Shown here piece after piece: positions 3,201-62,000 of a DNA stretch of 64,000 bases. This DNA is from Bugula neritina (lineage: Eukaryota; Animalia; Bryozoa), in NCBI GenBank assembly GCA_964035545.1, contig OZ037770.1, forward strand, positions 4,682,662-4,746,661, written 5' to 3'. Both the position numbers and the translations under genes were made by a program. The notes under the pieces are model-generated. The model was given only the letters and a program-made list of their open reading frames with translations, was not told where the DNA came from and did no database searches. The first letter of the stretch is position 1. Each line of letters starts with the position of its first letter.

Positions 3201-3457
3201 ATTATTTTGCTTATATAAAATAAATTAGCTTTAATAGTTCCAAGATATTTAGTCGCTTCACAAAACCGTTAAGAGAAGACAACTCCTGATTCCTTTTAAA
3301 AGTTTAAAGCACTTTTGTGGCTGACTGGGTGCACAGAACAGTCTAGAGTTTTCACAGATTAATTAGGACCCTTAAAACTCTCCATTTCTAAAAAAATTGC
3401 GTGGCCACCCCTCGGAGTGTAATGAGTGAAAGATAATTGGAGGTTACTTCTAGACTA
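221..3457 (-). mobile_element. Degenerate Academ (AcademX)-like DNA transposon, 3.2 kb
   Basis: 19-bp TIRs TAGTCTAAAAGTAACCTCC (221) and GGAGGTTACTTCTAGACTA (ending 3457), flanked by a 3-bp TSD TCT. The paralogous empty site reads CAAGTC-TCT-GTGTATG at ~45810. Minus-strand fragments FHALTGCDS, DTEVFIL, LPLTKDELSLHAKRASYQAAIW and a Cys-rich tail (~1035-1110) fit an XPG/PIN-like domain plus Cys finger. TAG..CTA ends and a 3-bp TSD fit Academ. Confidence 0.8.
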
Positions 3458-4662
3458 TCTGTTTATGTAGCCTTGTTATTTAATATAACAAATTAGGTAT
3501 AGCAGTGCATAGCTATGCTGAAGGGTATCATCTGTTATAACTGGCTGAGCATTGAACAATGGCAGACTAACGGTGATTCTATTTTTATCATAAGTATAAT
3601 TATATGAGAGGATATAAAATTCCAAGCTATAAGGATTGTCTTTATTTATCATTCTACATGCAGAGTTTCTACTAGCTTATTCATGTTTGGTCTCATTACA
3701 CATTATTTGCTATGCTAACTTGACTAAACAGAAAGTGCTATAACTTATATATGAAACGATTAAGAGTGTAGCTATAAGCTGTATGTTTTAGTGAGTTTAA
3801 ATAATTGCAAAATACTTGATTTGACAAAAGTGAACGTAGCTACTAGGCCACATGTATCAATAGCACTGCAGCTAGTAGAAGTCAGTAGGCTTGTAGAGTT
3901 AGTCATGAATGGTGGAATTTCCACATTTTGATAATTTTTACTCGTTATCCCCATCTCCTTAGACTACATAGCACTGTGTTTATATATAGTCATGTTATAG
4001 TACTTGGTCTATTTAGATAAGAGTATGTATAAGAGGCTATAAATTACTGGGTGATGATTATTTGATATAGCTCTGTTCAGCAGCAGAATATTGTGTAATA
4101 CTTCTGTCTTTGAGGAATTGCTGAAAGTGGTTTCTGCTGTTACACTATTATAACTCTCTAGCTTGTGTATTAAACCACTACTATTGAATGCTGTCACATT
4201 GTTATATTTAATTACCTTTTTGTATATTACTATATATGTGACTGTATCTAGCTTTATTTATCCCACTATATAAGTGATTGAAATATTCCAAAAATTCCTT
4301 CGATATGAGTTCTTTGCATTTTCTGTAAACTGTGTTAAATCAAATAAAAACTATCACTTTCTGTTTGAATCACAACTTATTCAACTTTAAAATGTTTGAT
4401 GCAAAGACATATTAGTAATTATTATATATTTATATAAAATAAATTATCTTAGTGTTTGAGAAAAGTATCAAACCCCCTGAAATAAATTTGTTGACCTGAT
4501 GTTTTGCTCAGCCCTTTCTGAGAAAATTTATGTACTTCAACAGTACAGAAAATAGCAGGTGACCATATTTTATTACTTCATGTATAATAAATGTTTTAGA
4601 TGGAGTTGTTACACCTTAGCTGATACTTATTACCAAGAAAGAGAATCTACTATTTGGTAGCC

Positions 4663-7600
4663 ATGGCAACAGCTGGTGAGTGAATTTTAATACTATTTTA
4701 TTCACTTATTTCTTGGAAAGCAGAAATATTCAAACTCTGAAGATATGTTGATATTATGCGACCAGAATTTAATATAATATATCTATAAGACTATTTTATT
4801 ATTACTACTGTCTATAGTACTGTTTTATGTCACCAATTAGTGTATTACTTTGAAAGTAGTAGAATAGATAAAATTATGCAAGCTGTTGGGTTAGAGTTGT
4901 CTTATCTCAACACAGTAAACACTGAACTACAAACCATACATTAAATGATTATTTAGAAAGAATAATTATAAATCTATCTAATAAAATATTTGTTACTTTA
5001 GTCATTATTCTGATTACTGAAATCCACCATATAAGAAATATATTCAATCAGTAGATGATAGGTGTCAGAATGATAGACACTACCTGCTAGCACTGTGTAA
5101 TAATCACTGCACTGTCACTGTATTATGTTACAGAGAATATGATAATCTGGTTCAGACATTCTGGACAGCCTCCTGTAAGCTGGTCAGATGTAAGGAGAGC
5201 TGATACCAAGTTATATACTACTGCTGAGGTGAAACATGAAGTTGGGAGTTATTACATCACAGATCTCAAGCTGGAGAGAACAATTCCAAGTAACATTGGA
5301 GAAATTGCGGGTAAAGCCCTGTGTCTACATGTTTCTAACCTGACTGACAGAGCAAGTCTAGACAAGTGAGTGTCTATTAAAATAGCTGTGTAAATGTTAA
5401 ACAAGTTCATTTATTAAATAATGATAATACTGCTATTTATGATGATGGATAAAATATAATGGATAATATAATATAAAATATACCTGATTGAATACACCAC
5501 TATAGTATACAGAGTACATACTACTTTTTGTGTTATTTATTAAATAATAATGGATAATAGACACTGAAGCTGAAGCATATTTTTGCTCATAATATATTCA
5601 TACAGTATAATATAAATCAACATAGTAATATGTGCAACATTGTATGTAATCCAAATGAGCTTATAAAACTGCCTCTACTGCTACTTCATAATATATGCTG
5701 AATCTAAGCATGCTTTTGCTCATAATATATGCATACAACATAATATACATCAACATAGTAATATGTGCAACAATGTATGTAATTCAACTAAGCTTATAGT
5801 TGTATAGAAACTAGGAAGTGCAAAACTGCCTCTACTCGATATCACTGACTAAATCATGTTTTATGTATATATAGCTAAAAATATGAGTAATGCACAGTCT
5901 ATAATATATTATACAAAAGACTATGTTATGCCCGCAACTGCAACTGCAAATGTTATTCAATATATTAATTTACAGAGCATTGTAGAGTGAGGCCTTGTGT
6001 ACTATAAACTGACAGCTAAGCTTGCTAAATGAAGCTTCCTCTTCCTACCTACAACATAATATTATAAGTGAAACTTTTTGTGTTTTTGTGTTACCAATAA
6101 GTGCGTTTCTTGCATATTTTACTTAGTTAAATACACAAGTAGCATGATATAATAGTATATATTATTTTGATATGGTAGACATAAATACATGACACACTTT
6201 ATATTACAGTCTATGTAAGCTGACTCAGTTAGAGAAACTAGACATAGGATGGAATCATCTCGACACAGTACCAGAAGTTGTGTCATCACTCACTTCACTT
6301 AAAGAGTTGAATATGGAAAACTGTAAATTATCTACTCTACCTGAGAGGTTTGTGGAACGCAGTCTTTCTTGTTTCAAACACTCAATAATTCACATGTTGA
6401 TATTATGCTTACCAAGTATTGGGAATTAGTATGTCACTATGTATTGTTGAAAAGCATAAAGCTGTAAATCACATATTCCTTGAGGCTATATGATATTAGA
6501 GTTTCTCAAAACTTAAAAATAAATATGTTTCAGTTATCTGGCATTACATTTCCTACTGCTATAAAACCTTCTTTAACAATTACTATAGCACCCACTTGTA
6601 GTTTACTAAAATCTAGTTCATGTTAAATGCTTTTTAGCTTTTGCTATTTTACTTTGAATTTGCCTTGTTGCAATAAATTTATTTCTTGGATATTTTACCT
6701 GATTGAATACACAAGTATAGAATACACAGTATATAATAATATCCTGATACAGTGGAATATATATATTATGCAGTTTATATTACAGTCTATGTCAGCTGAC
6801 TCGGTTAGAAAAACTACACATGAGAGATAATCCTCTCAACACAGTACCAGAAGTTGTGTCATCACTGACATCACTTAAAGAGTTGAATATGTGGAACTGT
6901 GGTTTATCTACTCTACCTCAGAGGTTTGTGTGTCAAAATAGTTATTTGTTTTGTATTAAACATTCTATATTTCACTTCTTTAATGCTTCTCAAGTAGTGT
7001 TATGCTATGATATCATAAATTGCCAACGTATGTTGAAAAACATAAACATGTATTCTTTTAACTTATCTAGTTGTTTGTCCTAACGTGGAAATAATACAAT
7101 TTTATAGTGAGCCATTGTATATCCTTATATCACAGAACTTTTTGTGATCAAAAATAAAGCAGCCCTCTCCAGTTTACTGACAATCATGGTAATAATCGAA
7201 TCTTTCTTAGCTTCTTGCGTCAAGCACTTTGACTATCCATTACCGGAATGAATTTTTTTTCTGCATTTTTTACTTGGCTGACTGTGCTTAGCAATATAAT
7301 ATGTACAGTGTATATTATTATGACACAGGAGACTACATACATCATACCCTTTATAATTATTGCAGTCTATGCCAGCTGACTCAGTTAGAGAAACTAAACT
7401 TAGGAGGAAATCCTCTCAACACAGTACCAGAAGTTGTGTCATCACTCACATCACTTAAGGAGTTGGATATAAAGAGCTGTGAATTATCTACTCTACCTGA
7501 GAGGTTTGTGGAACACAGTCTTTCTTGTTTCAAACATTCAATAATTCACATGTTGATATAATGCTTACCAAGTATTGCTAATTAGTATGTCACTATGTAT

Positions 7601-10600
7601 AGTTGAAAAGCATAAAGCTATAAATTACAATTTTCTTGAGGCTATATTGTATTTGAGTTTCTCAAAACTTGAAAATAAATATGTTTCAGTTTTCTGGCAT
7701 TACATTTCCTATTGCCATAAAAAGTTCTTCAACAAATACTATAGCACCGCTTGTACTTTACTAGAATCTATTTCAGATTAAATGTCTTTTACTTTAAATA
7801 TGCCTTGTCAAAATAAATTTTTTTTGCATGTTATACCATATTGAATACACCACTGTAGTATACACAGTACATAATATTATCCTGATACAGTGGATTGCAT
7901 ATATTATGCACTTTATATTACAGTCTGTGTCAGCTGACTAAGTTAGAGAAACTAAACATAAAATTGAATCCTCTCAACACAGTACCAGAAGTTGTGTCAT
8001 CACTCACCTCACTTAAAGAGTTGAAGATGTGGAACTGTGGTTTATCTACTCTACCTCAGAGGTTTGTGTGTCAAAATAGTTATTTGTTTTGTATTAAACA
8101 TTCTATATTTCACTTCTTTATTGCTTCTCAAGTAGTGTTATGCTATGATATCATAAATTGCCAACGTATGTTGAAAAACATAAACATGTATTCTTTTAAC
8201 TTATCTAATAGTTTGTCCTAACGTGGAAATAATACAATTTTATAGTGAGCCATTGTATATCCTTATATCACAATACTTTTTGTAATCAAAAATAAAGCAG
8301 CCCTCTCCAGTTTACTGACAATCATGGTAATAATCGAATCTTTCTTAGCTTCTTGCGTCAAGCACTTTGACTATCCATTACCGGAATGAATTTCTTTTCT
8401 GCATTTTTTACCTGGTTGACTGTGCTTAGCAATATAATATGTACAGTGTATATTATTATGACACAGTAGACTACATATATCATACACTTTATAATTATTT
8501 ATTGCAGTCTATGCCAGCTGACTCAGTTAGAGAAACTATACATAGGAGGAAATCCTCTCAACACAGTACCAGAACTTGTGTCATCACTCACCTCACTTAG
8601 GGTGTTGAATATGGAGAGATGTAACTTATCTACTCTACCTGAGAGGTTTGTGTGCCACAATAAGTTTTATATATCACTTTTAACATTCAATAATTGTTAT
8701 TTTGAAGCAGAATTTCAACACAGTAAATACTACATTAAGATGTTTATACTTTTTCTCTGCAAACCTACATATGAATCTCACCGTTGCTGGGGATATTGTC
8801 AATTAGCACACTATCTAGAAGTTTCCTCTGCTTCACAAGTTCTTTCATAGTATTTCTATATCTTTTTGAATATCTCCCATGATAGGTTGACTGGGCTGTT
8901 TTTCAGAAATCGTTTTAATAACTATTTTTATTATATTATAGTTATAGCTACTTCTGTACACATAATTTGCATATATATTATATTATTATAGTAACACAGT
9001 TTCTTTTTACTGTCTAATTGAATGCACAAGTGCTATATACAGTATCTACATAATATTATCCTGATACAGTGAATTACATATATTATGCACTTTATGTTAC
9101 AGTCTATGTAAGCTGACTCAGTTAGAGAAACTAGACATAAGTGGAAATCCTCTCTACACAGTACCAGAAGTTGTGTCATCACTCACATCACTTAAGGAGT
9201 TAAATATGGAAAACTGTAAAATATCTACTCTACCTGAGAGGTTTGTGAAACAGTCCTTCTTGTTTCAAACACTCAATAATTCACATGTTTTTATAATGCT
9301 TACCAAGTATTGTTAATTAGTTTGACAATATGTAGTGTTGAAAAGCATAAAGCTATAAATTACAATTTTCTTGAGGCTATATGATATTAGAGTTTCTGAA
9401 CACTTGAAAATAAATATGTTTCAGTTATTAGGCATTACATTTCCTATTGCTCTATAACCTTCTTTAGATAATACTATAGCACCCACTTGTGGTTTACTAG
9501 AATCTATTCCCCATTACATGCTTATTAGCTTTCGGTAGTTTACTTTGAATTTGCTTTGTTGCAATAAATTTGTTTCTTGATTATTTTTCCTGATTGAATA
9601 CACAAGTATGGTATAATATACAGTATATAATAACATCCTGATACAGTGGATTACATATATTATGCACTTTATATTACAGTCTATGTCAGCTGACTGAGTT
9701 AGAGAGACTATACATAGGATCGAATCCTCTCAAAACAGTACCAGAAGTTGTGTCATCACTCACTTCACTTGAAGAGTTGGATGTGGGGAGATGTGAATTA
9801 TCTAATCTACCTGAGAGGTTTGTGTGTCACTACAAATTGTACATCATTTTTAACGTTCAATAATTATTATTTTGTAGCAGAATTTCAGCACAGTAAATAC
9901 TACATTAAGATGTTTATACTTTTTCTCTGCAAACCTCCATATGAATCTCACCTTTACAGAGGATATTGTCAATTAGCACACTATCTAGAAGATTCCCGAT
10001 GTCACAAATAAGTTTATAGTATTCCAATATCTTTTTTGAAATGCTTCCCATGAGAGGTTGACTAGGCTTTTCTTAAGAAATTGTTTTATCAAACCTTTTC
10101 ATTATATTATAATGATTGTTACTTTTGTACCCATAATTGGTATATATTGTAGTAATTTTAGTAATTACTAGTTTTGTGGGCTTCTAGCGAGCAATATCTT
10201 TATATTATCTTCCAATAACATCACGGCTTGTAACAGGAATGAATGATTTATTAATACGCAGTAAAAGTATTAGCCAAACGATACATCCAGTATCAAGGGT
10301 AAAAATATACATCTATCTTACACTAACTAGCTATCACACTCTGAGTATGGCTGCTATCTACATCCGGCGCCCTCCGCGCATCGCTGGGGGTCTCATGTGA
10401 CGGATATCGGATTGGCTGGGGAGCACGTGGGATAACATACTACACTCCCCACTACACTGCCCCCCACCACAGCAGGAAGCCCACCTTCCTGATAATGCCA
10501 AAATAAAAAAATAAAATAACAACAAAAAAACAATAAGATATCTGCATCACCAGATCAAAATTTATACTTAGGCCAACGGTTTATTAAAAAAAAACATCTG

Positions 10601-13600
10601 GTTAAAATATAAAAATTAGGCACTATAAAACTAAGAGATTGTATCTGTACCAAGAGCTTTTTGTACGGCACCGAGAGATATGATGTGTAGAGAGACGGCA
10701 AGTGAGGCACCACCTGCGGCGTAGATCAGGAGGACAGCTGGAAAGAGTTAGGGACAGGGAAATAGAGAGGGGAAGGAGAACGTCATCTACGACACTGGGG
10801 TTGTCACAAAGATGGGTGTCGGGGCAATGTGGAAGGTAGACACTCAGTCTTTATCATCTCTCTTGAGCTGGGCCACAGAGTCCCGGAGAGCCTTGAGTTC
10901 AGAAGCGGCGGCTGATATCCTAGAAGCCAACCTCTCTCTCTCTAGTTCATGCATCCGTTGCTCCATCTCTCTTAGATTTCTAGCAACAGAGGAGTGGCGT
11001 TTGGGGATGAAGACTGCCATCGCCACTTACGAGAGGGTCGAGGGGAGACGGGTGAGGATGGGCATCATCTCTGGGGGACTTCTATCCGTTGTAAGACTAC
11101 TCGGGGTACGATGTTGGGACGGGGCGCAGTGTGAGCGGGGGTTTGGGGCGAGGTACCAGGAGCTTCTTGAGCCCAGGGGGTTTGGGGCAGGGTCCCTGGG
11201 TAATGGCACGGGGAGCGGGAAATTCTTGGCTCAGCCGTTCGTAACGAGCAGAGTCTGAGATGAATGGCTTGATGAGGCCGAGAAAAGTTATGAAGGAAAG
11301 CTTGTCCACATTGTAGAGATGTCCAACGTGACACTCCATAGTCCTCTGGTGACGGAGGGTGTAGTCCCTGTGGTAGCTGTACTCCCCACAGGGGCAGAAG
11401 GTGGTGATGAAATGTTGATGGATGTGTACTCGGAGGCGGCGAGGTGTGGTGAAATGCTGTTGACACAGCCGGCAGGTGGTGCAGTCGTCGTTTCCTCTAT
11501 CTTGTTGAATTATGTTCTCGATATCCTGGGTAACCCAGCTAGACCGGGTTATGAGTATCTCCGGTAGTGTAGCGGAAGTAGGTTCCGTCTCCCAAGCCAT
11601 CTCCAATGGTGGCATATCATCGTAGTTAGAAGAGCGAGTGATATCTGAAAGAGCAGAATTTTTGTTAGATCGAATTTGATCTTTACAGCATAATTCTGAT
11701 GACAATCGACTGTTACTAGTCTGAGAGTCATGCATCTTTTTGTACGGCACTTGAGAGACTGTGTTTAGACGTGTAGACTGACTGAGAAACATAGTGTCAA
11801 GCTCCAGATCTAGTAGATCGTCGGCCATTGTTATGTCCTCGTTTAGCCCAGTCTCCAGTAATTGTGATTCAACCGGAGTGATTAAATCAGAGTTAACTGA
11901 TGTCAGACCCGTTTCCATAGATAGGAATATTAGGACTAGGCAGGCTTACTTTGGAACTTGGTATTTGGAATCATACTCAACGTTCAAGTTTGGATTTTAG
12001 TGGTTTTAGTATGTGTACCTTTGGTGATGTCAGCGTAAGAAAAGACTGGACAGCGTGTTTATTTTGCATGGCTAGAACTGTTTGCCCCGGGCGCAATAAT
12101 TCCACCTAATACTCCGCCCTCGCAAAAGTTGATATTTTCGCGGTGTTCACAACTTCCTTCGTTTCGCTACCAGTCTCTCAGTACCGCACCCAGCTTGGCC
12201 TTCATGTCTGCCGCTTGTAACGCAGTCGCATACGAAGTCTCAAATATACTAGGGGTTGCCTAGTACGTTGTCCACTTTCTAAGGGAAATGGTGTGCTAGT
12301 TGGGGGAGATGGTGTAGTCACTGCTGGTGGGGGTGTACTCACTGGTGGACTTTTATGTTCCGCCGGGGGCGTTTTCGGCCTGCTATTGACTGTTGTATCA
12401 TTTTCAAGATTTCCGGATACAGCCCTCCCCCGGGGGGGTTTTGCACTTCCGGAGCTAAAACAGGTTCCGGAAGTGTTGGCGTTAGACTTGGCGCTGAGGG
12501 TGGTGGGCGCACTTCTGGTAACGGAAGTGGTCTTTCCTGCCTCACCAAGTCTTCTGCCCGCGGCATGACCACTTCATACTCTGGTTCATGTCGTCGCCGC
12601 TAGCGCGTTGCTGTCTGCCTCCTGGGCTCTAACAACCGGGGGGGAGGGGGGGTTCTCCAGCCGCACCTGGGCTAGCCCAATACAGCTTCAAGGGAGCCTC
12701 ATTCTGGATAGACACCTGTCCTGAGCGCTCAAGCTTGTAGGTGTGATTGGGCATCACTTCAACTACCGCGTAGGGTCCCACGAACTTAGGCTGTAGCTTA
12801 GCCGCCTGTCCTTGATGCCTACGGTAGTTGACCATCCACACCCAGTCTCTAACTTTGTAGAGGGGTGGTTCCTCGGAGTCTTCTTTTCGCACCTGCCACT
12901 GCTTTTCCCGTAGTATTGTGTGTGCGACCTTCATTTGCTTTACCAATTTGCTGACATACTCGTGGATGGGGTAGTCCTGCTCAGGAATGTGGTAGGTGAG
13001 GTCATCTGGCACCCTAGTCTTTCGAACGAGCATCAGGAGGTTAGGGGTCTCACCAGTACTGGTGTGCGGTGTGCTACGATAGGCCCGCATGACTTGCGGC
13101 AACACCGTATCCCATTTCTTCTGACTCCGGTCGAGGAGAACACTGCGGAGTGCATCGCCCAGCATCCGGTTGTTGCGCTCCACCACTCCGTTTTCCTGGG
13201 GGTAGTATGGAGTGGTCCTGCTTTAATTTACTCCTCAGAGGCAGCAAAGATCGCTCATCAGCTGAGACTAAAATTGAGCCCCCTGGTCCAAATGTATATG
13301 CTCAGGCAAGCCAAAATAGCAGAATACATGTTGGTCCAGCACCCTGGCCATTGTTGGAGCGGACGCATCTGGGATAGCCAGCGCGTCTGCCTACCTAGTG
13401 AAGTGGTCGGTTAATACTAGGATCCAACTGTTTCCTCTGGGGGTTAGGGGCATGGGTCCGACCAGGTTGACAGCCACCACTTGCCGCGGCCTTCCAGCAT
13501 ATAGCCTCCGCCGTCCCGTTTCACCAAGGAGACGACCATGCTTGCTGGCCTGGCAGATTTCGCACTGTCTTACTCTGATTCGTACATCACGCTCCATGCT

Positions 13601-19600: not shown

Positions 19601-22600
19601 AATTGCAAAATTCGGCCCGTTGTGCCCCCGTTACCCCTACTTACAATTATACTGTTATATTATATATCTTTATAAAATACTTAAAATGTTATGAATCATA
19701 TATAATATGATACTCGTACATAATTGTAACTTAGACATACTTGTTTTCTTTCCTTAATTAATGTACTAAATCAAGGTATTGTATATAAACTTGTTATTGT
19801 AACTGCAACTTAGTACTATATTATGTGTAATTATTGTTATATTAATATTGGGTATCTTTATGAAAACTAATATATCAATTACCTGTATAGTTAAGTCTAA
19901 TAATAGAATTATTATATATTATTAGAATACAGAGATTAAAGAAGTTACAGGAACTCACAATTTCAGAGAATAACTTCACCAGTCTACCTTCTTCAGTATG
20001 TGCATTGAGTAATCTGCACACACTGGATATATCCAACAACAGATCCATGACGTCCTTGAACCCTGAGATACTACAGCTAACACATCTTGAGTCTTTCCGT
20101 ACACGTGAATGTGATGCTCTTACATCTCCTCCGCTAGAAATCTGTGTAAGTGGAGTGGATGCTGTGCGACAATACTACACAGACTTGGCTAAAGGTGCTG
20201 GTAGAAATCTTCCATTTGCTACAACAGTGGTGTTGGGGAACACCATGGCAGGTAAAACCAGTCTAATCAGAACATTACAGAGCACTGACAAGAAGAGAGT
20301 TCTGACTGACAGAAGTCCTAATGCAGAGTATGATGAGACCACAAAAGTGTTTAATGTGGAGAAGGTGGAGGTGGATGGTACAACTCTTCGTCTATTTGAT
20401 ATGGGAGGCCAAGAAGTTTACCATATCACATACCATTTAACACTGAGACAGAATTGTGTACCAGTCATTGTAGTCAACATGGAGCAGTATGATCAGATTT
20501 CGAAAATGTCTACAAACAGAGAGGCTGTGAGAAAGCTGGCTTTTGACTTCATGTCTCACCTCTATCTCGCTCATCCAACTCTTGGTCCGCCTAAGCTTGT
20601 CTTCACACACAAGGATAAGTTTCGGAGTGAAGTTTTCCACCAGCTTCGAAGAAAGTTTCTTGTAGTGTCCGAGCAGTTATGCAGAAATATTCTTGAAGAA
20701 GAGAAAAGTTTAGAAGGTGACTTTGCTCGAATTCAACATTTCACTAAATCAAATGGAAAAATCTTTGAAAATGAAAGCATCTATGAAGTTGGGAAATTTG
20801 ATGAGTACAAGATATTTGAATCGATTAGAAGATCTCTTCTTCAAAGTTGCCAACACTTTGTAAAGCCACTTCCAAAAGTCTGGGAGGATGCCAACAACAA
20901 CATTTTGTCCTTACAGACTCCACATAACACCTTTGATGAAGTATTGGCTGTGATAAACAAAAAGCAGGATAACATTGAAGCAAAGCAATTGGATACGATT
21001 ATCATGTACATGCATGATTGTGGCAAAGTTCTCTGGTATAAACATATTGATGCACTCAGGCCATACATATTTCACAAGATCACAGAAATAACCAAGCTAC
21101 TCTGTGTCTTGTATCATCATGATCCAGACATCTGGCAAAGGAGAGTTGATCAGTTCAAACCATATTGCTGCAGAGAAGGAGTGAGAATTGAAAAACAAGA
21201 TTTTGGAGAGTTTGTGAATTCCTTTAAAATAAATGGCTTGATGACGAAATCTCTTCTTGAATATTTGATCAGAAAAGAAACTTCGTTCACTGATGATAAT
21301 AATGTCGAAATTGCTGTTTGTTTGCTCAGAACATTCCGTTTATTGTATGGCCCTTTGAATAAGGATTCTGAAGATCCTTACTTTATAATCCCCCAGTTTG
21401 CCAAAGAATCCTACAGCCTCTCCTACACTCCACCAAAGGAGCTACTGCTTCATACCGACACACAGTTTAATGGTCTGGCATTACCGCTACATGTCTACCA
21501 TCAGATGACGGTTGGATTGCTAGAACTATTTGCTGACGATTCTGCCACAATACAAGTGAAAAGGAATGGAGCAAATGTATATCAAGATAAAATATACACA
21601 CAGCTGATACATGACTATGAATCCAGGAGAGTGTTGCTCTATACGTCATCTGGTGCTAATAATATTACCAAAGCGTGGGAAAAACTCATTTCAGTCAACA
21701 ACAACATCCTCAGACATGTTATGGAAATTTGGACTGCCAGTCGTCCAGTCACTGCCTGTATCTCTGCTCACTGCTTCCTGCTAGGTGTTCCATGTCCTAA
21801 AAAGTCTATTCATTCTAAATGGTGTTTTCGCTCCTTGAAGAAGCCTTCACCAGTTGTCAAGAAGTGCAGCGGATCTTCAACAATCTTGTGCAATAATGAG
21901 GAGATCCCAAGAGCTTTGATTTTCCCATGTATGTATCACTAATAGTGGTTATTACTATGTTTCTATAAATTGAAACTATTGCCTACTACATAAATAATTT
22001 TCATTACTACAAACTCTAAAAAAAACTTGCTAATTTTTTTTTAAATTTGAAAATATTTAAACCAAATACATTCTGTTCTGCGTAGATTTGTAACATTCTC
22101 GTAGTGGTTCTGCCGCAACTTATATTTTAGCTACCAAATACGTTGATTACGGTATACATAATAGGTGAGCTGGTCATAGTATATGTAGACTGGGTACATT
22201 TTACGTAATATGGAAGCTGGTTGTAGTACATGTAGACTGCACTGTTTTGTTCAGGTGAGGCATTGACTGAGACAGAAACCGATGAGCTGGTGAAGCTATT
22301 GACTCAACTTAAACTTCGTAAACAACAGAATGATGCAATCAGAATTGGTACATCTTTATAATACTCATTTTCTCAAAATCAGAGATCTACAATGTAGCAC
22401 TTTATTTACCTTGAATGGAAATTTTATAAGAAAATGCCTTTTTTCAGACAATCAATTAAAGTGCAACCTTGCAAACTTTTTCTTTTTCAATTTATCCTGG
22501 TATTAGCCAATCAAATCATGTGACTGCAGATGATGATGGTGATCTGAGTGATCTCTCTGATGATGATGACAATCTGTATCCTGATGAAGAGAATGAGGAA

Positions 22601-47007: not shown

Positions 47008-50000
47008 ATGGCAACAGCTGGTGAGTGAATTTAAATACTATTTTATACACTTATTTCTTGGAAAGTAGAAATGTTTAAACTCTGAAGATATGTTGATAAT
47101 ATGCCACCGCAATATAATACATCTATAAAACTATTTGATTATCACTACTCTCTATAGCACTGTTTTATGTCACCAATTAGCGTATTGCTTTGAGAATAGT
47201 AGAATAGATAATATTATGCAAGCAGTTGGGTTAGAGTTGTCTTATCTCAACACAATAAACACTGAACTATAAACCATACATTAATTGATTATTTAGAAAG
47301 AATATAAAGCTATCCGATAAAATATATGTTATGTTAGTCATTTTTATGATTACTGAAATCCACCATAATATATGACAGGTGTCAGAACGACATACATCAT
47401 CGGCTAGCACTGTGTAATAATCACACTGTCACTGTATGATGTTACAGAGAAGATGAGAATTTGGTTCAGACATTCTGGACAGCCTCCTGTAGACTGGTTA
47501 GATGTACTGTGTGCTGATACCAAGTCATATACTACTGCTGAGGTAAAACGTGAAGTTGGGAGTTACGATATCACAGATCTCCAACTGGAGAGAACAATTC
47601 CAAGTAACATTGGAGAGATTGCTGGTAAAGCCCTGTGTCTACATGTTTCTAACCTGACTGACGGAGCAAGTCTAGACAAGTGAGTGTCTATTAAAATAAT
47701 AGTGCAAATGTTAAACAAGTTCATTTGTGTTATTTATTAAATGATAATTGATAATATGTGGTGCTGAAGCATGTTTTTGCTCATAATATATTCATACAAT
47801 ATAATATACATAAAAATTAGAACATGTGCAACATTGCATGTAATCCAAATGAGCTTATAGCTGCAATAGCTAGGGAGTGTAAAACTGCCTGTACTGTTAT
47901 TCGATGTCATAGACTAAATCATATTTTATGTAAATATAGCTAAAATATGAGTAATGTACAGAATATGATATATTATACAAAAGACTATCTTATGTCATCA
48001 ACTGCAAATATACAATATGAAACATTACTTAATATATTAACTTACATAGCAATTTAGACTGAGGCCTTATGTACTATAAACTCACAGCTAACTTTGCAAA
48101 ATGAAGCTTCCTCTCCTCACCTACAACATAATATAACTGAAACTCTTTGCTGTTTTTGCAACAATGTATCTGTTTTCTGCATGTTTTTTTCGGTTAAATA
48201 CACAAGTAGCATGATATAATAGCATATATTATTTTAATATGGTAGACATAAATACATGACACACTTTATATTACAGTGTGTGTCAGCTGACTCAGTTAGA
48301 GAAACTAGACATAGGATGGAATCCTCTCAACACAGTACCAGAAGTTGTGTCATCACTTACATCACTCAAAGAGCTGGTTATGTGGAGCTGTGGTTTATCT
48401 ACTCTACCTGAGAGGTTTGTGTTTCACAATATTTCTTCTGTTTCAAACATCCAATATTGCACATCTTTAATGCTTCTCAAGTAGTGGTATGCTATGTTAT
48501 CATAATATATTGCCAACATATGTTAAAAACATAAGTATAAGCATTTTTTGAACTTATCTAATAGTTTGTCCTAACTTGGAAATAATACAGTTTTATGGTA
48601 TGCCATTGTATATTCTTATATCACAATTATTTTTTTAATTATAATAATAAAAGAGCCATCTGTAGTTTACTTGCGATCATGGAAATAACTGAATGCTTCT
48701 TAGCTTCTTGTCTTATTGACTTTGACTATCCATTACCAAAATGAATCTGTATTTTGCATGTTTTACCTGGTTGAGTGCACCAAATGAATATAATCTATAC
48801 AATATATATTATTATGATACAGTAGACTATATATATCCTATTTTTTATGATTATTACAGTCTATGATAATGAATAATATATGCTGAAGCTGAAGCATATT
48901 TTTGCTCATAATATATTCATACAATATAATATACATCAACATAGTAATATGTGCAACATTGTATGTAATCTAAATGAGATTATAGTTGTAGAAACTAGAG
49001 AAGCTGCCTCTACTGTTACTTGACAGTGTTGATTAAATCATGTTTTATGTATATATAGCTAAAAACTGAAGTAGTGTACAGTTTACAATATATTATACAA
49101 AAGACTATGTTATGTCATCAACTGCAAATGTACAATCTTAAACATTAGTTAATATATTAATTTACATAGCAATTTAGAGTGAGGCCTCATGTACTATAAA
49201 CTAACAGCTAACCTTGCATAATGAAGTTTCCTCTCCTCACCTACAACATAATATAACTGAAACTCTTTGCTGTTTTTTGCAACAATATATCTGTTTCCTG
49301 CATCTTTTATGTTGAATACACAAGTAGTCCGATATAATGGTATATATTATTTTGATATATGGTAGGCATAAATACATGACACACTTTATATCATGTTACA
49401 AAACCTAAATATGCATATTTTTTGAAGTTATCTAATAGCTTGTCCTAACGTGTAAATAATACAGTTTAATGGCATGCCATTGTATATCCTTATATCACAG
49501 AACTTTTGATAATCAATAATAAAACAGCCATCTGCGGTTTACTGGCAATCATGGTAATAATCGAATCTTTCTTAGCTTCTTGCATCAATCACTTTGATTA
49601 TCCATTACCGCAATGAATTTGTTTTCTGCATTTTTTACCTGGTGGACCGTGCTTAGCAATATTATATGACGTAACATGAACCTCCCCAACTCTGACAAAA
49701 TAAGACCAGCTAAAGCCACCTTTAATTCTGAGATGAATAAAAATGATTATATGTATAGATACAACACCCGGGAAAATAAAGCATCTACATTTTGTACACC
49801 AGACCTATCTCCTGAAGAGCGTGACCGTGACTATAAACTTAGAAAACTGAGGGACGAATTAAAAGCAACTCACTCAGACAAAATGTTTCAAGTAAGAAGT
49901 TTGCCCATGACTCTGATACTATTGCTTCAGAATCTCTCTGGGACCCCAGCAAGACTAACACCACAACTGATAAAAACACAGCTGGACATTAAATATATAC

Positions 50001-53000: not shown

Positions 53001-56000
53001 AAAGGAGCCAAAGCGCTCCGAGTGAGATTAATTAGATGAGATGAGATGAGATGAGATGAGATGACGTTCCATTGCTGGAATTATTGTGTTTTCTGCACTT
53101 TTACCTGGCTGACTGTGCTTAAGCAATATAGTCTATACAGTGTATAGTATTATCACACAGTAGACTACATATATCTCACCCTTTATGATTATACAGTCTA
53201 TGTCAGCTGACTCAGTTAGAGAACCTATACATAGCAGGGAATCCTTTCAACACAGTACCAAAAGTTGTGTCATCACTCACATCACTTGAGGAGTTGGATA
53301 TGAGGATCTGTAAATTATCTGCTCTACCTGAGAGGTTTGTGGAGTCTTTTATTATTTCGATCATTCAATAATTCACATTTTGATATAATGCTTACCAAGT
53401 ATTGCTAAATAGTGTATCCTTATGTACCGTTAAAAAGCATAAAGCTATAAATTGTAATTTGCTTGAGATTTTATTATATTATAGTTTCTAGAAACTTGAA
53501 AATAAACATGTTTTAATCATTTGGCATTACATACTCTAATGGTATAAACCTTGGTTAACAAATAATGTAAACTATCAGCCCTGGTTTGTAAACAGGCTCA
53601 TTGTGGTCTTCAGTCTCTACTGATGTTTTATTGGTAAAACTGTCGTGAAAACTACAATTAATGAAATAGTGAATATGCCATAATGAATGATAATATGTGA
53701 TAAAACTTTCATCAGTGATAATTTGACACTAACTAATAAGCTTCAAGTAAAGAACAAGTCTTGCTATAAAAATCAATATACACCATCTAAATTATTAAAA
53801 TTGATATTAAAAAAGATAATACAAATGCCATAAATGATTGTCAAAAATACTACAATAACAATAATTACCTTGTTAGACCATCCGGGAATGAAGCTTATAA
53901 CTTTGATGTTAATGCAGTAGGTATTTATTCTCTACTTTGATAATATTGATTTAAATGGAACAAAATATTTAACATAACAAGTGAAAAGTTACTCAGCAGG
54001 TTATGCTACATGTTAGCTGACTGAAAGTGTAGCATAGAATGAGAGCTGAGAGTAAAATATTCTTTAATGAATTAATCATTTCAGGAAGCTGATGGTGTAA
54101 AAAACTATTTATATAACTTAGTCATAGTAAAATTATACACATGAGGAAATCATGTTGACTGTCGTGTGCAAAATTGTCACAGCCATAAAAGCAAAACAGC
54201 TACATATACATGACTAAGCAATGGTTTTTCTAATTATAGGCACGTTGGTTAACTTTGTTTGTTTTGATGAGAGCAAGAAATTTTACTGGCATTCCAATTA
54301 ATTACAAATAATATATAGCACCAACTTCTAGTTTACTAGAATCTATTTCAATCATTCAATAATTCACATTTTGATATAATGCTTACCAAGTATTGCTAAA
54401 TAGTGTATCATTGTGTACCATTTAAAAGCATAAAGCTATAAATTGTAACTTTGCTTGAGATTATATTAAAGTTTTACGAAACTTGAAAATAAACATGTGT
54501 TAATCATTTGGCATTATATACTCTAACGGTATAAACCTTCCTTAACAAATAATATAGCACCCACTTGTAGTTTACTATAGTATCTATTTCCCATTAAATG
54601 CTTATTAGCTTTCTGTATTTCACTTTGAATACGCATTGTCAGAATAAATTTGTTTCTTGGATATTTTACCTGATTGGATATACAAGTAGTATAATATACA
54701 GTATATATTATTATCCTGATACAGTGGATTACATATATTATGTACCTTTTATTACAGTTTATGTGAGCTGACTCAGTTAGAGAAACTACACATAGCAGGG
54801 AATCCTCTCAACACAGTACCAGAAGTTGTGTCATCACTCACATCACTTGAAGAGTTAGATATGAGAATGTGTGAATTATCTAATCTACCTGAGAGGTTTG
54901 TGGAGTATTTAATTGTTTCAAGCATTCAATAATTCACTATTTGATATAATGCTTACCAAGTATTGCTAAATCGTCTATCATTATGTACAGTTAAAATGTA
55001 TAAAGCTATAAATTGTAATTTGCTTGAGAATATATTGTATTAAAAATTCACGAAACTTGAAAATAACCATGTTTTAATCATTTGGCATTACATACTCTAA
55101 TGCGGTATAAACCTTGGTTAACAAATAATATAGCACCCACTTGTACTTTACTAGTATCTATTTCCCATTAATAGTTTATTAGCTTTCTGTATTTTACTTT
55201 GAATACGCATTGTCAGAATAAATTTGTTTCTTGGATATTTCACCTGATTGGATATACAAGTAGTATAATATACAGTATATAATATTATCCTGATAGAGTT
55301 TATTACATATATTATGTACCTTTTATTACAGTCTATGTCAGCTGACTCAGTTAGAGAAACTAGACATAGAAGGGAATCCTCTCAACACAGTACCAGAAGT
55401 TGTGTCATCACTCACATCACTTAAAGAGTTGAATATGCAGAGCTGTGAAATATCTACTCTACCTGAGAGGTTTGTGTGTCACAATAAGTTTTATATATCA
55501 CTTTTAACATTCAATAACTATTATTTCATAGCCATATTTCAACACAGTAAATACTACATTAAGATGCAAACCTACATATGAATCTCACCGTTTCTGGGGA
55601 TATTGTCAATTAACACACTATAATCTATAGAAGTTTCCTCGACTTCACAAATTATTTTATAGTATTTCAATATCTTTTTTGAAATGCTTACCATGATAGG
55701 TTGACTAGGCTTTTTTTCAGAAATCGTTTTAATAACTCTTTTCAATATATTTTAACTATAGCCACTTTTGTACACAAAATTAGTTTTTATTATTTTATTA
55801 TAATAACATATTATCTCATTATTTTCAAATTAGTCAGAAAACCACTTCCTTATATTTTTAATGACATCATGTATGACATACTTGACTCAATCAACTGTAT
55901 TGTGTAAGGCTCATTAGTAACAATGCACAGTGGATTATAATATGGTATGTTTTACTTGAATAATTCAAGTTTGAGGTACAATTATTTCGACATGAAAGAT

Positions 56001-59000
56001 CTGACATTATATTTTTAACCTAAGAAGAGAAAACAAATCATATATTGCCACCTTGTTTTTTGCATGCTCTACTTTAGTTGTCTATTTCAACTCTCACTTT
56101 ACTAGAAGCCAATTTTTATTCTATTCCTGTTCTCAAATAACCCATGAATATATTTCTTTATATTTACTTTACATTTATAAGTTACTAATTAACTGCCCTT
56201 TAGAAGTGTAACATGTTCCTTGCGAGACTATGACTTTCCAGAGTTGTATTCTCTCTTAGTGAAATAATTCACAACTTCTACTTCCTGTCTAAAAATATGC
56301 TGCATTTATTAGAATACTTAGTGGGAAGTTGTGTCAGAAGTATTTTTTTTTTTATTGAAACTACTTTAATGCCTTGTGTAGGTGTTTCAGAGCTGTACTG
56401 TGTTCCTATTTGATGATAAATTACATGTATTATGGCACATAAAACAATATTCCTTATAATTATAACATCCATATAGTAGAATATCAGTGTGAACAGTTAC
56501 TCAGTGATCAGAAGTGTCAGAAGTATTTTATTTTTACTTCACATTACTTTAATGCCTTATGCAGCTGCCACAAAGCTGTAGCCTACCATGTTCCTATTTG
56601 CTGATAACTGTATTATGCATATGGCACATACTAGGAATTTTGTACTCTGTACTATAAAATATTATTCCTTCTAATAGAATACTTGTGTGAACAGTTACTC
56701 AGTGATCTGCCATATAAATGAAGATTTCTGTATGATAGTATTCTGTCTAGGGTGTGTTTTTATGACAGTTCTTAGTACGAATGTAGCACTTTTCTTACCA
56801 AATATACTTATAATTATGCTGTTATATATATATATCTCTATGAAATACTTGAAACTTTATGCATCGTATATATATATAACATGGTACCCGTACATAATTG
56901 TAACTTAGACATACTTGTTTCTTTCCTTAATTAATGTACTAATTCAAGGTATTGTATATAAACTTGTTATAGTAACTGCAACTTAGTACTATATTATGTG
57001 TAATTATTGTTATACTAATATTGGGTATCTTTATGAAAACTATTATATCAATTACCTGTATAGTTAGGTCTAATAATAGAAATATTATATATTATTAGAA
57101 TACAGAGATTAAAGAAGTTACAGAAACTCAACATTTCAACGAATAACCTCACCACTCTCCCATCTTTAGTGTGTGCATTGAGTAATCTGTACACACTGAA
57201 TTTATCTGGCAACAAATCCATGACATCCTTGAACCCTGAGATACTACAGCTAACACATCTTGGGTTCTTCTATACATCTGGATGTGATGCTCTTACATCT
57301 CCTCCACTAGAAGTCTGTGAAAGAGGACTGGATGCTGTGCGACAATACTACACAGATTTGGCTAAAGGTGCTGGTAGAAATCTTCCAGTTGCGACAATAG
57401 TCATGCTGGGGAACACAATGGCAGGAAAAACCAGTTTGATCAGAACATTACAGAGCACTGACAAGAAGAGAGTTTTAACTGACCGAAGTCCTAATGCAGA
57501 GTATGATGAGACCACAAAAGTTTTCAATGTGGAAGAGGTGGAGGTGAATGGTACAACTCTTCGTCTCATAGATATGGGAGGCCAGGAGGTCTACCATATC
57601 ACATACAATTTAACACTGAGACAAAATTGTGTACCAGTAATTGTAGTCAACATGGAGCAGTATGATCAGATTTCGAAAATGTCTACAGACAGAGAGGCTG
57701 TGAGAAAGTTGGCCTTTGACTTCATGTCTCACCTCTATCTCGCTCATCCATTTCTTGGCCCACCTAAGCTTGTCTTCACACACAAAGATAAGTTTCGGAG
57801 TGAAGTTTTTCAACAGCTTCGAAGAAATTTCCTTAAAGTGTCTGAGCAGTTTTGCAAAAATATTCTTGAAGAAGAGAAAGGTTTAGAAGGTGACTTTGCT
57901 CGAATTCAACATTTCACTCAATCAAACGGAAAAGTGTTCTCCGACGACAACATATATGAAGTTGGAAAATTTGACGAGTACAAGATATTTGAATCGATTA
58001 AAAAATCTCTTCTTCAAAGTTGCCGACACTTTATCAAACCCCTTCCAAAAGTCTGGGAGGATGTCAACACAAAAGTGTTGTCCTTGCAGTCCGCACACAA
58101 TACCTTTGATGAAATCCTGGCAGAGATGAAGAAAGAACGGAATGATATTGATAGAAACCAATTGGATACCATCATCATGTACATGCATGATTGTGGAAAA
58201 GTTCTCTGGTATAAGAATGTTGATGCACTCAGGCCATACATATTTCACAAGATTACAGAAGTTACCAAACTGCTGTGTGTCTTGTATCACCATGATCCAA
58301 ACATCTGGCAGAGCAGAGTAGATCAGTTCAAACCATATTTTTCAAGAGGAGTGAGAATTGAGAAGCAGGACTTTGAAGAGTCTGTGAACTACTTCCAAGC
58401 AACTGGCCTAATGATGCAATCCCTTCTTGAATATCTGATAGCTCAGGAAACTTTATTTAGAAATCCGGGTGATGTTGAAATTGGGCTTTGTTTGCTCAGC
58501 ACGTTCCGTTTGTTGTATGGCCCTAGGAATGATGAATCCTATGATTCCTACTTCATAATCCCTCAGTTTGCCAAAGAATCTTACAGCCTCTCCTACACTC
58601 AACAAAAGGAGTTACTGCTTCATACTGAGACTCAGTTTAATGGTCTGGCATTACCGCAGCATGTCTACCATCAAATGACTGTTGGTTTGTTAGAGATGTT
58701 TTCTAAAGAGTTTGCTACAATGCAAGTGGAGAGGAATGGTGCTAACGTCTACCAAGATGAAATATACACACAACTGGTACACGATTACGCATTGAGAAGA
58801 GTTTTACTCTACGTTTCATCTGATGCGTCCAACATTTCCAGAATGTGGGAGAATCTCATTTCGGTCAACAACAACATCCTCAGACATGTTATGGAGACTT
58901 GGACTGCTAGTCGACCAGTCACTGCCTGCATTTGTGCTCACTGCTTGCTACTTGGGGTTTCCTGTCCTAAAAAACTCTTTCACTCCAAATGGTGTCTTCG

Positions 59001-62000
59001 ATCCTTAAAAAACCTGCTGCCACCTAATGTCAAGAAGTGTGGTGGAGCTTCAAAGATGTTATGTAATGGAGAGGAGGTCCCTAGCGCTTTAATCCACCCA
59101 TGTATGTTCACTCATAAAATTGAATTTCAACAGAAATATTTTCAATAATTGTTTCAACAAATAAATATTTACTACTTTGTGTTGCAAAAAAACTTTTAGT
59201 AAAAATTTTGAGCAATTAGTTGAATATTTTGTCTTAATTATAAAATCGCAACTTAAAAGCATGAGCTCCTATTCACATGTCATTATCTCGTAATTTAAAT
59301 TATTTAAGGTTTAGTAATACAAATCTTGTTTGTTCTATTCAGGTGAGAAATTGTCAGAAACAGAATCAAATAAGTTGAAAAAGCTAGTTGCTGAGCTCAA
59401 ACTGCGAGGAGATCAGAACAATTCAACTGGTAAATTTTTTTAGACAGAACTTGATGTGGGTCATTTTACTTAATTTAGTACAGGAGTATGACCTGTGTCA
59501 TGAACACACCTAAATAATCAAACCTCCTCCTAATTTTGCTTGATTTCCCATGTTTTTTCCTAATTATTCAGCTACTTTTGACTGCAGACTGTCATGAAAA
59601 AACCATATTTCTCTGAAATCAAAAGTAGCTGAATAATTAGGAAAAAATATGGGAAATCAAGCAAAATTTAGAAGAACCTTGATTTTTTAGGTGTGTTCAT
59701 TTAAGCTTTACTACTTTTGGGCAAAACTGATGTTCATTAGCAGCTAAAATGTAAAAAAATAGCTAAAAACAGGTGTGTTCATCACTTTTGGGCAAAAACT
59801 TATGTTAATTAGCAGTTAAATTGTAAAAAATAGCTAAAAACTGGAGATTTCCAGTGTGTACTAAATTAAGTAAAATGACCTATGTGTACAGCCACCACTT
59901 GATAAAACTCCTTGTTTTGCAAAGCTGGCCATACATGTAGATATCTAAGAGCTTTTTTATGCATGCGTTCATTGTAATCCATTGCTTTTTGCTGCTAGTG
60001 GTTGAGAAAAATTTTAATTGTATGGCTTTTAAATGATGACAAAAATCAACTGTTCACATGACTGTCTAGAAATATTAGCTGATGATCTGAGTGATCTCTC
60101 TGAAGATGATGACAATCTGTACCTTGATGGAGAGAATGGGGAAGGCCTGAAGCTGATACAACTTGAATTGAAGCCAACCACCAACCCAAAGATAAAGCAG
60201 CTATTCTCAGATACTGACAAGGTGAATGTATATTCAGTTGATGAATATACGTCTATAGACTCTTTTTACTAGATAATCATGACTATAGTCGTTCAATTAC
60301 TTTTAGAAAAAGTTCAATCTGAACGCAATTTTTCCATTTACTTCAGTTAACTTTTAATTTTTAGCCATGTCTGTTTTTGGGCTGTGTCTGTTTGGTTAAG
60401 GTTTAATCTGTTGTCACACGGTTAGGAAATATTTGTAGTGTCGAGATTTCTGGCCCCTTTGATGTATTGATTTGTGCACCTGCATGCATGGTTGAATATT
60501 TTCTGCAACATATTCTGATTTTTTTGTGAAGAGTAGCAGTAGTATAAACGTTATTCCAAAAGATATTAAAGGTCAGATGTAAATAAAGACTAAAAGAGAG
60601 GTAGAGAGGTCCGTGGTGTCCTTAAGAAATAAACTGGATGTAGTGTTAAGATCGCCTATAAGTCTCTGTGGAATAATCTCAGTGGGACAAAATTGTTTTT
60701 CGCCTGGAACCTTAAACTTTTCTGTACCTTCGCCATAATTTGCTATTGCATTCTATGGTATCTTTAAAGTTAGTAAATACTTTGTTGAAGAGGTTTGGCT
60801 TTTGAAGTTTAGTTCACATATAATGGTTTAAATGTCAAAATTGATGATATCTTGTCAGTATGGCCATGCATTGTCATTATTTACTTCCATAGCTTTACCA
60901 ATTTATATACTTGATTTAGAAAAATGTAGGATTAATTACAAGCTATTATCAACAAATCAGAATTAATATACTTGTAGCCTGCTATTGTTTTTTAAACCAT
61001 ACCTCAATGATATTTTTTTATGCTTAACCGACTACCAAATGCAATGAACTATTTCGTTAGTAAAATTATCATTCGGTCTGATACATTAAAATTAATTTTA
61101 TTCTAGTTTATGCTACCCAATTGGCTAATAAAATAAAATCTAAAATACAAAAAGCAATTGAGATATAAAATGTTTTTTTTTCAAAAGTATGTAATTTGAC
61201 TGGTTTTTTACAAGACTTAAAAATTTAAGACTTGTTTGGAGTTTGTGAATTACTACTGTATGCAATGCTTTAAGCATATTTGTATCCAGGTGCTCAGTAT
61301 GACCAGAGAGAGAGGAAGAGCTCTGATAATAAACAACAAAAATTTTGTTGAAAGACCAGACTTATGCAGGGAAGGTTCAGATGCTGATGTTGAGAACGTG
61401 TCTGTCATGTTGAAATCTCTCAAGTTTGATGTTGAGACAAACACAGACCTAAAGGCAGAGGTATGTTGTTATGGTGAAAACAATGCGAGCACTATTTAAC
61501 CATCACACTTGAAAGTTGACCCAATGATGGACTGTAATTGTTCAGTTTATCAATGCCTAAAAATTAGGACTATATAAAAACCATAAGCATGTTTGCGGGT
61601 TACAATTTTGTTTTTTGCAGGTTGGATAATTGTTATTTTATTCAGTTTTCATAACTTTGTATCAGTTATTAAACATAGTTATTTTCATATTGGTAGGAAA
61701 TGATGTCTGCTGTGAAGTCTGAGATAAGAATAGAGAAAAACAATGGCTTGGGCTGTCAAATACTGGTTATTATGACGCATGGTGGAGAAGATAACTGCAT
61801 CTATGGAACTGACCTTGAGCAGGTCAACCTTACAGACTTCTATGATTTTCTCGCTCCTCTGAGTCTGAAGCCTAAACCTACAGTTGTCATCCTACAAGCT
61901 TGCAGTGGAGGTAATTACATTTTTGTATAGAAAACTTTCATTTTTAGTCAAGTAGTGAAAATAATACAGAGACCCTTGAAAAGTTTTTTCTGTACTGATC

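Follow-up and report, generated by a model that had tools for sequence, protein, structure and literature searches.

Mosaic leucine-rich repeat exon cassettes in a bryozoan: probable unequal exchange and diversifying selection in tandem exon arrays

Background

The LRR-ROCO genes of brown algae (Ectocarpus, Saccharina), in which leucine-rich repeats (LRRs) are encoded by phase-2 exons, undergo exon shuffling and are under diversifying selection (Zambounis et al. 2012, PMC3341825; Teng et al. 2024, PMC11378527). Each LRR occupies its own 72-bp exon, all LRR introns are in phase 2 and the cassettes are interchangeable; additional LRR exons, intact or inactivated, lie within introns, the non-coding strand included (PMC3341825, PMC11378527). 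Somatic recombination was hypothesised for these genes in 2012 (PMC3341825), and recombinant loci had not been found by 2024 (PMC11378527). This exon-shuffled family is the closest precedent among described systems for the subject of the present analysis, two arrays of LRR exons in a stretch of 64,000 nucleotides (the window) from the genome of the bryozoan Bugula neritina (assembly GCA_964035545.1, contig OZ037770.1, positions 4,682,662 to 4,746,661 of the forward strand).

Judging by the order, strand and phase of the exons, the arrays would be the sensor arms of two tandem LRR-Roc-COR-caspase genes. They have in common with the brown-algal genes the apparent order LRR-Roc-COR, an LRR arm made of tandem phase-2 exons of equal size, so that any number of exons keeps the reading frame, clustered recent paralogues that differ mainly in their LRR exons, a varying number of cassettes and apparent selection on LRR surface positions. 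They differ in that each exon is 138 bp long and encodes two LRRs of 23 residues, instead of one LRR in 72 bp, and in that the host is an animal and the predicted protein runs on into a caspase domain. Cassettes on the non-coding strand were not found in the window, where a probe for the exon core matches the plus strand only (11 matches). Finally, joins inside exons have produced hybrid exons here, which goes beyond the gain and loss of whole exons.

Three other systems invite comparison. Plant resistance genes (Cf-4/Cf-9, RPP5, the flax L and M loci) undergo intragenic unequal crossing-over and sequence exchange in their LRR arrays, and the bryozoan arrays resemble them in that the number of repeats varies, repeats can be chimeric, similarity between clustered paralogues forms a patchwork and the solvent-exposed xxLxLxx residues are hypervariable, apparently under positive selection. 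Plant LRR arrays, however, mostly lie in one exon, whereas every second repeat boundary is an intron here, so that the ancestry of a module can be traced independently by its intron family. The variable lymphocyte receptors (VLR) of lampreys and hagfish and the pseudogene conversion of chicken immunoglobulins likewise involve a large bank of cassettes, conserved blocks that flank the patches and joins within the blocks. In those systems the germline gene is incomplete, the donor cassettes are not spliced and a cytidine deaminase acts in lymphocyte-like cells; in the window, each cassette is an ordinary exon that can be spliced, all have the same orientation and lie in complete genes, and the mosaics seen appear to be germline. 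In snake-venom PLA2 genes and conotoxins, as here, paralogues have near-identical introns and several-fold more different coding positions, with the proportion of non-synonymous differences (pN) exceeding that of synonymous ones (pS). The excess in the bryozoan cassettes resides in seven codons of the repeat unit and is accompanied by homogenisation of the framework and by hybrid exons, which, unlike in the venom families, indicates recombination as well as substitution. The array is a mechanistically ordinary and well-marked case of recombination and selection in LRR cassettes, an animal counterpart of brown-algal ROCO and plant resistance genes for which a new mechanism is not required, and nothing that was seen calls for a programmed or somatic process.

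Architecture of the cassette arrays

The window contains eleven 138-bp exons, flanked by AG and GT, in phase 2 at both ends and open in one frame, seven of them in copy 1 and four in copy 2, the array of which lies 42 kb downstream. A codon opened by the final two bases of one unit is completed by base 1 of the next exon, which is followed by 45 whole open codons. The consensus of the cassettes, L..L..LxxLxIxxNxL / L..LxMxxCxL with 23-residue spacing, is that of LRRs, and three cassette peptides score 28.4-31.1 bits against the Pfam family LRR_4 ("two copies"; gathering cut-off 27). Together with an intron of ~440 nt, the exon makes up a module with a period of ~575 bp. For the analyses below the exon was divided into a 5' framework (positions 1-29), patch 1 (30-43), a core (44-91), patch 2 (92-118) and a 3' framework (119-138).

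At least 357 candidate copies of the exon are present in the 216-Mb assembly, nearly all of them in the interval of 2.5-6.25 Mb of the contig that holds the window; the 40 candidates that were scored are all at least 91% identical. As a family sample we used 133 cassettes from the window and twenty stretches of 9-10 kb (designated L031, L036 and so on). In this sample 130 cassettes are intact, that is, AG/GT-flanked, open and in phase 2-2, with introns tightly grouped at ~420-460 nt, and the family-wide tests rest on these 130 out of at least 357. In the other three (L038:8557, L045:7996 and L046:3752) the GT donor is gone or there is a deletion within the cassette; they represent decayed cassettes inside otherwise intact arrays. 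The number of cassettes per locus ranges from 7 and 4 in the window to at least 13 in L031, L033 and L044, differences of the kind that unequal exchange between paralogues is expected to leave. In L033 (4640000-4649999 on the same contig), the cassettes at 3097-5454 form a perfect three-cassette tandem duplication, with 0-1 differences over exons and intron ends. It includes two unusually short introns of 118 nt and reads as evidence of a very recent unequal exchange in a neighbouring gene.

All cassettes of the window are on the plus strand and are given here with the residues of their two patches. In copy 1, e1 (6210..6347; DIGW / NMENCK; LRR_4, 28.4 bits) is identical to the paralogue cassette L031:2514 in its upstream flank and 5' part, e2 occupies 6786..6923 (HMRD / NMWNCG..LPQ), and e3 (7366..7503; NLGG / DIKSCE) differs from the paralogue cassette L031:7084 at 2 of 138 positions. 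The 5' half of e4 (7924..8061; NIKL / KMWNCG..LPQ) is without a close relative, with a best match elsewhere in the genome of 96% over 67 nt. The hybrid exon e5 (8508..8645; YIGG / NMERCN) is followed by e6 (9103..9240; DISG / NMENCKI), which is colinear with L031:9380 through both introns, and by e7 (9680..9817; YIGS / DVGRCE), the last cassette of copy 1, after which a C-type intron starts from 9818. Copy 2 comprises f1 (48277..48414), f2 (53197..53334), f3 (54758..54895) and f4 (55332..55469).

A 48-bp core probe finds eleven matches in the window at no more than three mismatches, with 0 expected by chance, seven of them at 6.2-9.8 kb and four at 48.3-55.4 kb. A preliminary description of the window had called this core invariant, which overstates its conservation, since only 3 of the 11 copies are exact. 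Across the 130 cassettes, pairs differ at 6.6% of core sites and at ~15% of the sites in each flank. Nor is homogeneity restricted to the core: at nearly every framework codon, over the whole exon, one synonymous codon is used in 92-100% of the cassettes. The "core" is simply the framework stretch between two hypervariable patches.

Intron families were called by local alignment of the 440 nt that follow each exon. The alignments bear out the preliminary description, according to which the cassettes are followed by introns of three families, A, B and C, in the orders A-B-A-B-C-A-C in copy 1 and B-A-A-C in copy 2. Family A follows e1, e3, e6, f2 (first ~234 nt only) and f3, with 86-88% identity within copy 1, where it is represented on the plus strand by i1 (6348..6785; identical to i3 at 372/422 and to i6 at 386/437 positions), i3 (7504..7923) and i6 (9241..9679). 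Family B follows e2, e4 and f1. Its first two members, i2 (6924..7365) and i4 (8062..8507), both on the plus strand, are nearly identical, as had been noted, with 426/438 matching positions (97%) in their alignment, and are ~81% identical to the intron after f1; compared in steps of 80 nt, i2 also matches B introns in L031, L036 and L038 at 97-100%. Family C follows e5, e7 and f4 with 84-87% identity, i5 (8646..9102, plus strand) matching the introns after e7 and f4 at 290/344 and 308/355 positions. Families A and B are distant relatives, ~66% identical over their whole length, and C has only the last 70-90 nt in common with A. All three families turn up again in many paralogues. An Rfam scan of the whole window placed no RNA family in the introns of conserved length. 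The B-type intron after f1 (48415-53196) is swollen to 4782 nt and holds a reverse-transcriptase fragment at 51916-52758, and the intron after f2, 1423 nt long, has kept only the first ~234 nt of family A.

Joins within exons

The joins within exons are real. A change-point scan, in which e1 to e3 were aligned against e3 to e5, marks out a low-divergence tract of ~620 bp on the plus strand (6829..7449 against 7967-8591), which consists of the core and 3' half of e2, the B intron, and the 5' half and core of e3. Differences amount to 19/622 positions inside the tract (3.1%) and 88/658 outside it (13.4%), with twice the log-likelihood difference equal to 48 and p <= 0.003 by column shuffling. 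The ends of the tract fall between patch 1 and patch 2, both in e2 and e4, whose common sequence begins at 6829, and in e3 and e5. The relations between half-exons that had been described for these pairs are confirmed: e2 and e4 have a common 3' half (98%) and differing 5' halves (77%), and e3 and e5 a common 5' half (95%) and differing 3' halves (83%). For e1 and e6, the common 3' half (94%) and A intron were correctly noted, but the 5' half is common as well (91%) despite unrelated upstream introns, so that in this pair the whole exon goes with the downstream intron. Since the A-B-A-B period is found in L031 as well, where introns of either type are ~99% alike, the boundaries of the tract are better read as joins from later unequal exchanges.

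Several exons can be resolved into parts with different relatives. In e5, the 5' flank and the first ~17-31 nt resemble L031:8222, and the remainder of the exon with its C intron resembles L031:8784, these being the 11th and 12th cassettes of L031; the junction, at exon positions 17-32, lies in the 5' framework and not in the core. Clean hybrids with a single switch and 0 violations are L031:4212 (join at 59-89), L036:7245, L036:7780 and L038:5718, and the switch of the hybrid L038:6286 is also located inside positions 59-89. The core had been proposed as the focus of such joins, a claim that is not borne out. In a map drawn from 25 exons whose two introns have different close relatives, of which the 14 with at most one violation were used, the 5' framework and the sequence ahead of it account for 42% of the junction mass, the patches for 9% and the 3' end for 14%; the core receives 34%, equal to the 35% of exon length that it occupies.

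The two halves of an exon were also compared with its introns by Mantel correlation. For the 3' half and the downstream intron the correlation is 0.43 in the window (11 exons, p = 0.004) and 0.17 in the family (120 exons, p = 0.001), and for the 5' half and the upstream intron it is -0.03 in the window and 0.12 in the family (p = 0.001). With the intron on the far side, the corresponding window and family values are 0.03 and 0.02 for the 5' half and -0.01 and 0.06 for the 3' half, and the two halves of one exon correlate at 0.17 and 0.10. Each half-exon is thus tied family-wide, weakly but significantly, to the intron next to it, and shows no such tie to the intron across the exon. Taken with the tract and the hybrid exons, these ties uphold the part of the preliminary description that proposed half-exon mosaicism by recombination; its further idea that half-exons generally go with their introns finds no such backing. 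In particular, the 3' half-exon, the intron and the following 5' half-exon are not inherited as a unit, as the half-exons that flank one intron are uncorrelated across the 130-cassette family (Spearman 0.025).

Pairs of modules in which one intron end is at most 4% diverged and the other unrelated locate the loss of similarity more closely. Viewed from the close side, 92-94% of these pairs have their first exon mismatch already in the neighbouring framework or patch, and just 6-8% of the tracts extend to the core. Where the upstream intron is close and the downstream one far, patch 1 is "close" in 5% of pairs, which is the background level. In close pairs, a switch to at least 20% divergence is seen in 35% of cases across an exon against 8% across an intron interior of equal length (4.3-fold), and joins are probably enriched in exons.

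Divergence of exons and introns

Exons and introns have histories that are decoupled in both directions. Intron i3 is identical to an intron ~110 kb away (L036:8495-8914) at 420 of 420 positions and has 1-3 differences from two L031 introns, while the half-exons that adjoin it differ from those in L036 at 7/47 and 8/43 positions (15-19%), or by 15-20% when their counterparts in both L036 and L031 are considered. Introns are generally better conserved between paralogues than cassette exons. When the array of the window was painted in 80-nt steps against the other loci, its introns were typically 97-100% identical to paralogues 100-170 kb off, and the best match fell to 91-96% over exons e1, e2, e4, e5 and e7.

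The differences between otherwise near-identical modules are concentrated in seven hypervariable codons (11, 13, 14, 34, 36, 37 and 39), each of which is found with 8-16 different amino acids. In modules with both intron ends at most 4% diverged (mean ~1%), these codons have a pN of 0.15-0.20 and a pN/pS of ~2.6, against a pN/pS of 0.76 and a pS of 0.026-0.036 in the framework. Nine non-overlapping pairs of such modules differ at 61/1242 exon positions (4.9%) and 33/2700 flank positions (~1.2%; Fisher p = 2e-11); 39% of their hypervariable codons differ, one third of those at two or three bases. In LRR proteins of known structure, the x positions of LxxLxLxxN/C point towards the concave surface. 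The sequences are what would be expected under diversifying selection on the LRR surface positions of the cassettes, and such selection on the seven concave-face codons would explain why exons diverge faster than near-identical introns.

The opposite relation is found in modules with unrelated introns. In these, introns that differ by ~36% when forced into alignment accompany a framework pS of just 0.11. Relative to intron divergence, synonymous divergence of the framework is 3-fold higher when modules are near-identical and 3-fold lower when they are unrelated.

Mechanism and alternative explanations

It is likely, in our view, that cassettes recombined in the germline by unequal crossing-over and short gene conversion of the ordinary kind, and that this, together with diversifying selection on the seven concave-face codons, gave rise to the mosaic. 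The marks of a tandem array that evolves by unequal crossing-over and gene conversion, namely copy-number differences, hybrid repeats and a tract of raised identity, are all present. Homologous recombination in the germline would act between misaligned or paralogous modules in a large tandem-repeat cluster. Unequal crossing-over between misaligned cassettes would change their number and create hybrid exons, conversion tracts of varied length would spread introns between paralogues, and short exchanges within exons would keep the framework uniform, synonymous sites included, while diversifying selection would keep the patches different. Homology-dependent recombination requires common sequence, and as alignable sequence between unlike modules is limited to the exon and the final ~90 nt of the intron, exchanges between such modules would have to resolve in the conserved exon framework. 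Joins would then scatter over the three framework blocks roughly by block length, and the core would have no special status. The multi-base codon differences at ~1% neutral divergence favour templated replacement of patches, as does one replaced half-exon (in L038:9663, below) that is closer to cassettes elsewhere than to the cassette in the corresponding position. For only 6 of 30 replaced patches in the family sample, however, is an exact copy present in a cassette whose introns are not both close.

A number of observations weigh against this explanation. The 4.3-fold excess of switches in exons is insecure under a locus bootstrap, P(exon <= intron) being 0.105, and the module pairs are not independent events. 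The pairwise homoplasy index (PHI), calculated on 122 unique exons, reaches significance in none of the windows used (p 0.6-0.9), and homoplasy is equally high for adjacent and distant sites, a result that recurrent substitution at hypervariable sites would give as well. A whole-genome search with three replaced half-exons returned no exact donor, the best copies having 2-3 differences in 67 nt, so that templated patch conversion is something we infer rather than observe. Purifying selection on synonymous sites, for example in splicing enhancers, could add to the uniformity of the framework, and errors of assembly in the tandem array, or somatic events, may have contributed to the pattern.

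The mechanism put forward in the preliminary description, in which a 3' half-exon, an intron and a 5' half-exon recombine as a unit by joins focused in the 48-bp core and thereby pair the patches combinatorially, accords with several of the results: the clearest tract in the window ends between the patches on both sides, L031:4212 and L038:6286 switch at 59-89, the 3' half in the window correlates with the downstream intron, and the two halves are nearly uncorrelated family-wide. We nevertheless regard it as unlikely. The core takes junctions only in proportion to its length, behind the 5' framework, where the junction of e5 is found, and with its few informative sites it is not resolvable as a join. 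Half-exons around one intron vary independently, patch 1 stays at background level next to a close upstream intron, the 5' half in the window shows no relation to the upstream intron, i3 is fully conserved between two half-exons that are not, and e1 and e6 have the whole exon in common. Recombination within exons might instead be dispensed with altogether, if whole modules were duplicated in tandem and the patches then changed by very fast point substitution under diversifying selection. The pN/pS of 2.6 at the seven codons would fit this, as would the PHI result, the three replaced halves that lack exact donors and the two thirds of differing hypervariable codons that differ by a single base. 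Substitution by itself is quite unlikely to suffice, however, because the flanking intron types combine freely (A-B, A-C, A-A, B-A, B-C, C-A), which calls for joins at or inside exons. Moreover, clean switches from one relative to another, as in e5 and several further exons, occur at framework sites outside the hypervariable positions, the remaining third of the differing hypervariable codons carry 2-3 changes at ~1% neutral divergence, and the framework departs from the introns in synonymous divergence in both directions. In L038:9663, too, the replaced 5' half matches cassettes at other places to 97% and the cassette in the corresponding position to 88%.

The family offers at least 357 cassettes, uniform in framework and hypervariable in their patches, and its exons change far faster than the flanking introns, all of which might also suggest programmed diversification, by somatic or targeted-germline rearrangement, conversion or hypermutation of cassettes with the framework blocks as homology anchors. 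The same speculation was made for the brown-algal ROCO genes (PMC3341825), but according to a later study somatic recombinant ROCO loci have not been found in brown algae (PMC11378527). Since the cassettes of the window are all in one orientation and in complete genes with AG/GT intact, ordinary splicing suffices, and mosaics that are fixed in the assembly and common to paralogues should be germline; programmed diversification is accordingly highly improbable. The particular proposal that framework blocks anchor a targeted copying of patches among at least 350 cassettes, either germline-biased or somatic in the zooids of the colony, strikes us as very improbable. If true, it would amount to templated receptor diversification in a colonial invertebrate, with a logic like that of chicken immunoglobulin gene conversion or lamprey VLR assembly. 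Least probable of all is that the mosaics are chimeric joins between near-identical modules made during assembly of the tandem array. Modules that are 85-100% identical with a ~575-bp period are indeed prone to mis-joins; yet 130 of 133 cassettes are perfect in length and frame, several independent paralogues show these mosaic relations again, the contig spans 16 Mb, and neighbouring modules are 3-15% divergent, enough for long reads to resolve.

With germline exchange and selection as the likely source of the mosaic, the intron families act as natural barcodes of module ancestry and provide an unusually clear record of the diversification of a receptor surface. The family, in which seven surface codons in a uniform framework turn over several-fold faster than the neighbouring introns, is a candidate for immune or cell-death receptors, and the locus is suited to asking whether diversification in a colonial animal is somatic or germline.

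Host genes and neighbouring elements

The assignment of the arrays to LRR-Roc-COR-caspase genes draws on exons located downstream of the cassettes on the plus strand, and order, strand and phase suggest that the cassettes and these Roc-COR and caspase exons make up one transcript. In gene 1, a large exon (20005-21942; open frame 19891..21939) encodes terminal LRRs, with matches to Pfam LRR_4/LRR_8 at its start, followed by a Roc GTPase domain (33.6 bits, cut-off 27) and a putative COR domain. The Roc-COR exon of gene 2 is at 57169..59148 on the plus strand (Roc, 33.3 bits, same cut-off). COR-A is placed as expected after Roc, with scores below the threshold of 35.3 bits in both genes (24 bits in gene 1 and 19 bits in gene 2). 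Two exons of gene 1, at 22871-23152 and 23467-23697 on the plus strand, match Pfam Peptidase_C14 (E 9e-11 and 3e-6) and encode the caspase domain; within 22871-23697, the stretch around the usual catalytic histidine and cysteine appears altered. When the exons were searched singly, the relatives in protein databases were metagenome-derived and carry PF08477, some of them also PF16095.

The intron of gene 1 between the last LRR cassette and the Roc-COR exon contains a GC-rich retroelement (10300-17500, minus strand; ~54% against 31%) with protease, reverse-transcriptase and integrase zinc-finger open reading frames (ORFs). No long terminal repeats of at least 100 nt were found around it in the region of 10-18 kb. 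Further downstream, a 14-bp minisatellite occupies 35798-37495, with 122 copies and 88% matches, and accounts for a strong spike of GC skew and for long spurious ORFs on the minus strand.

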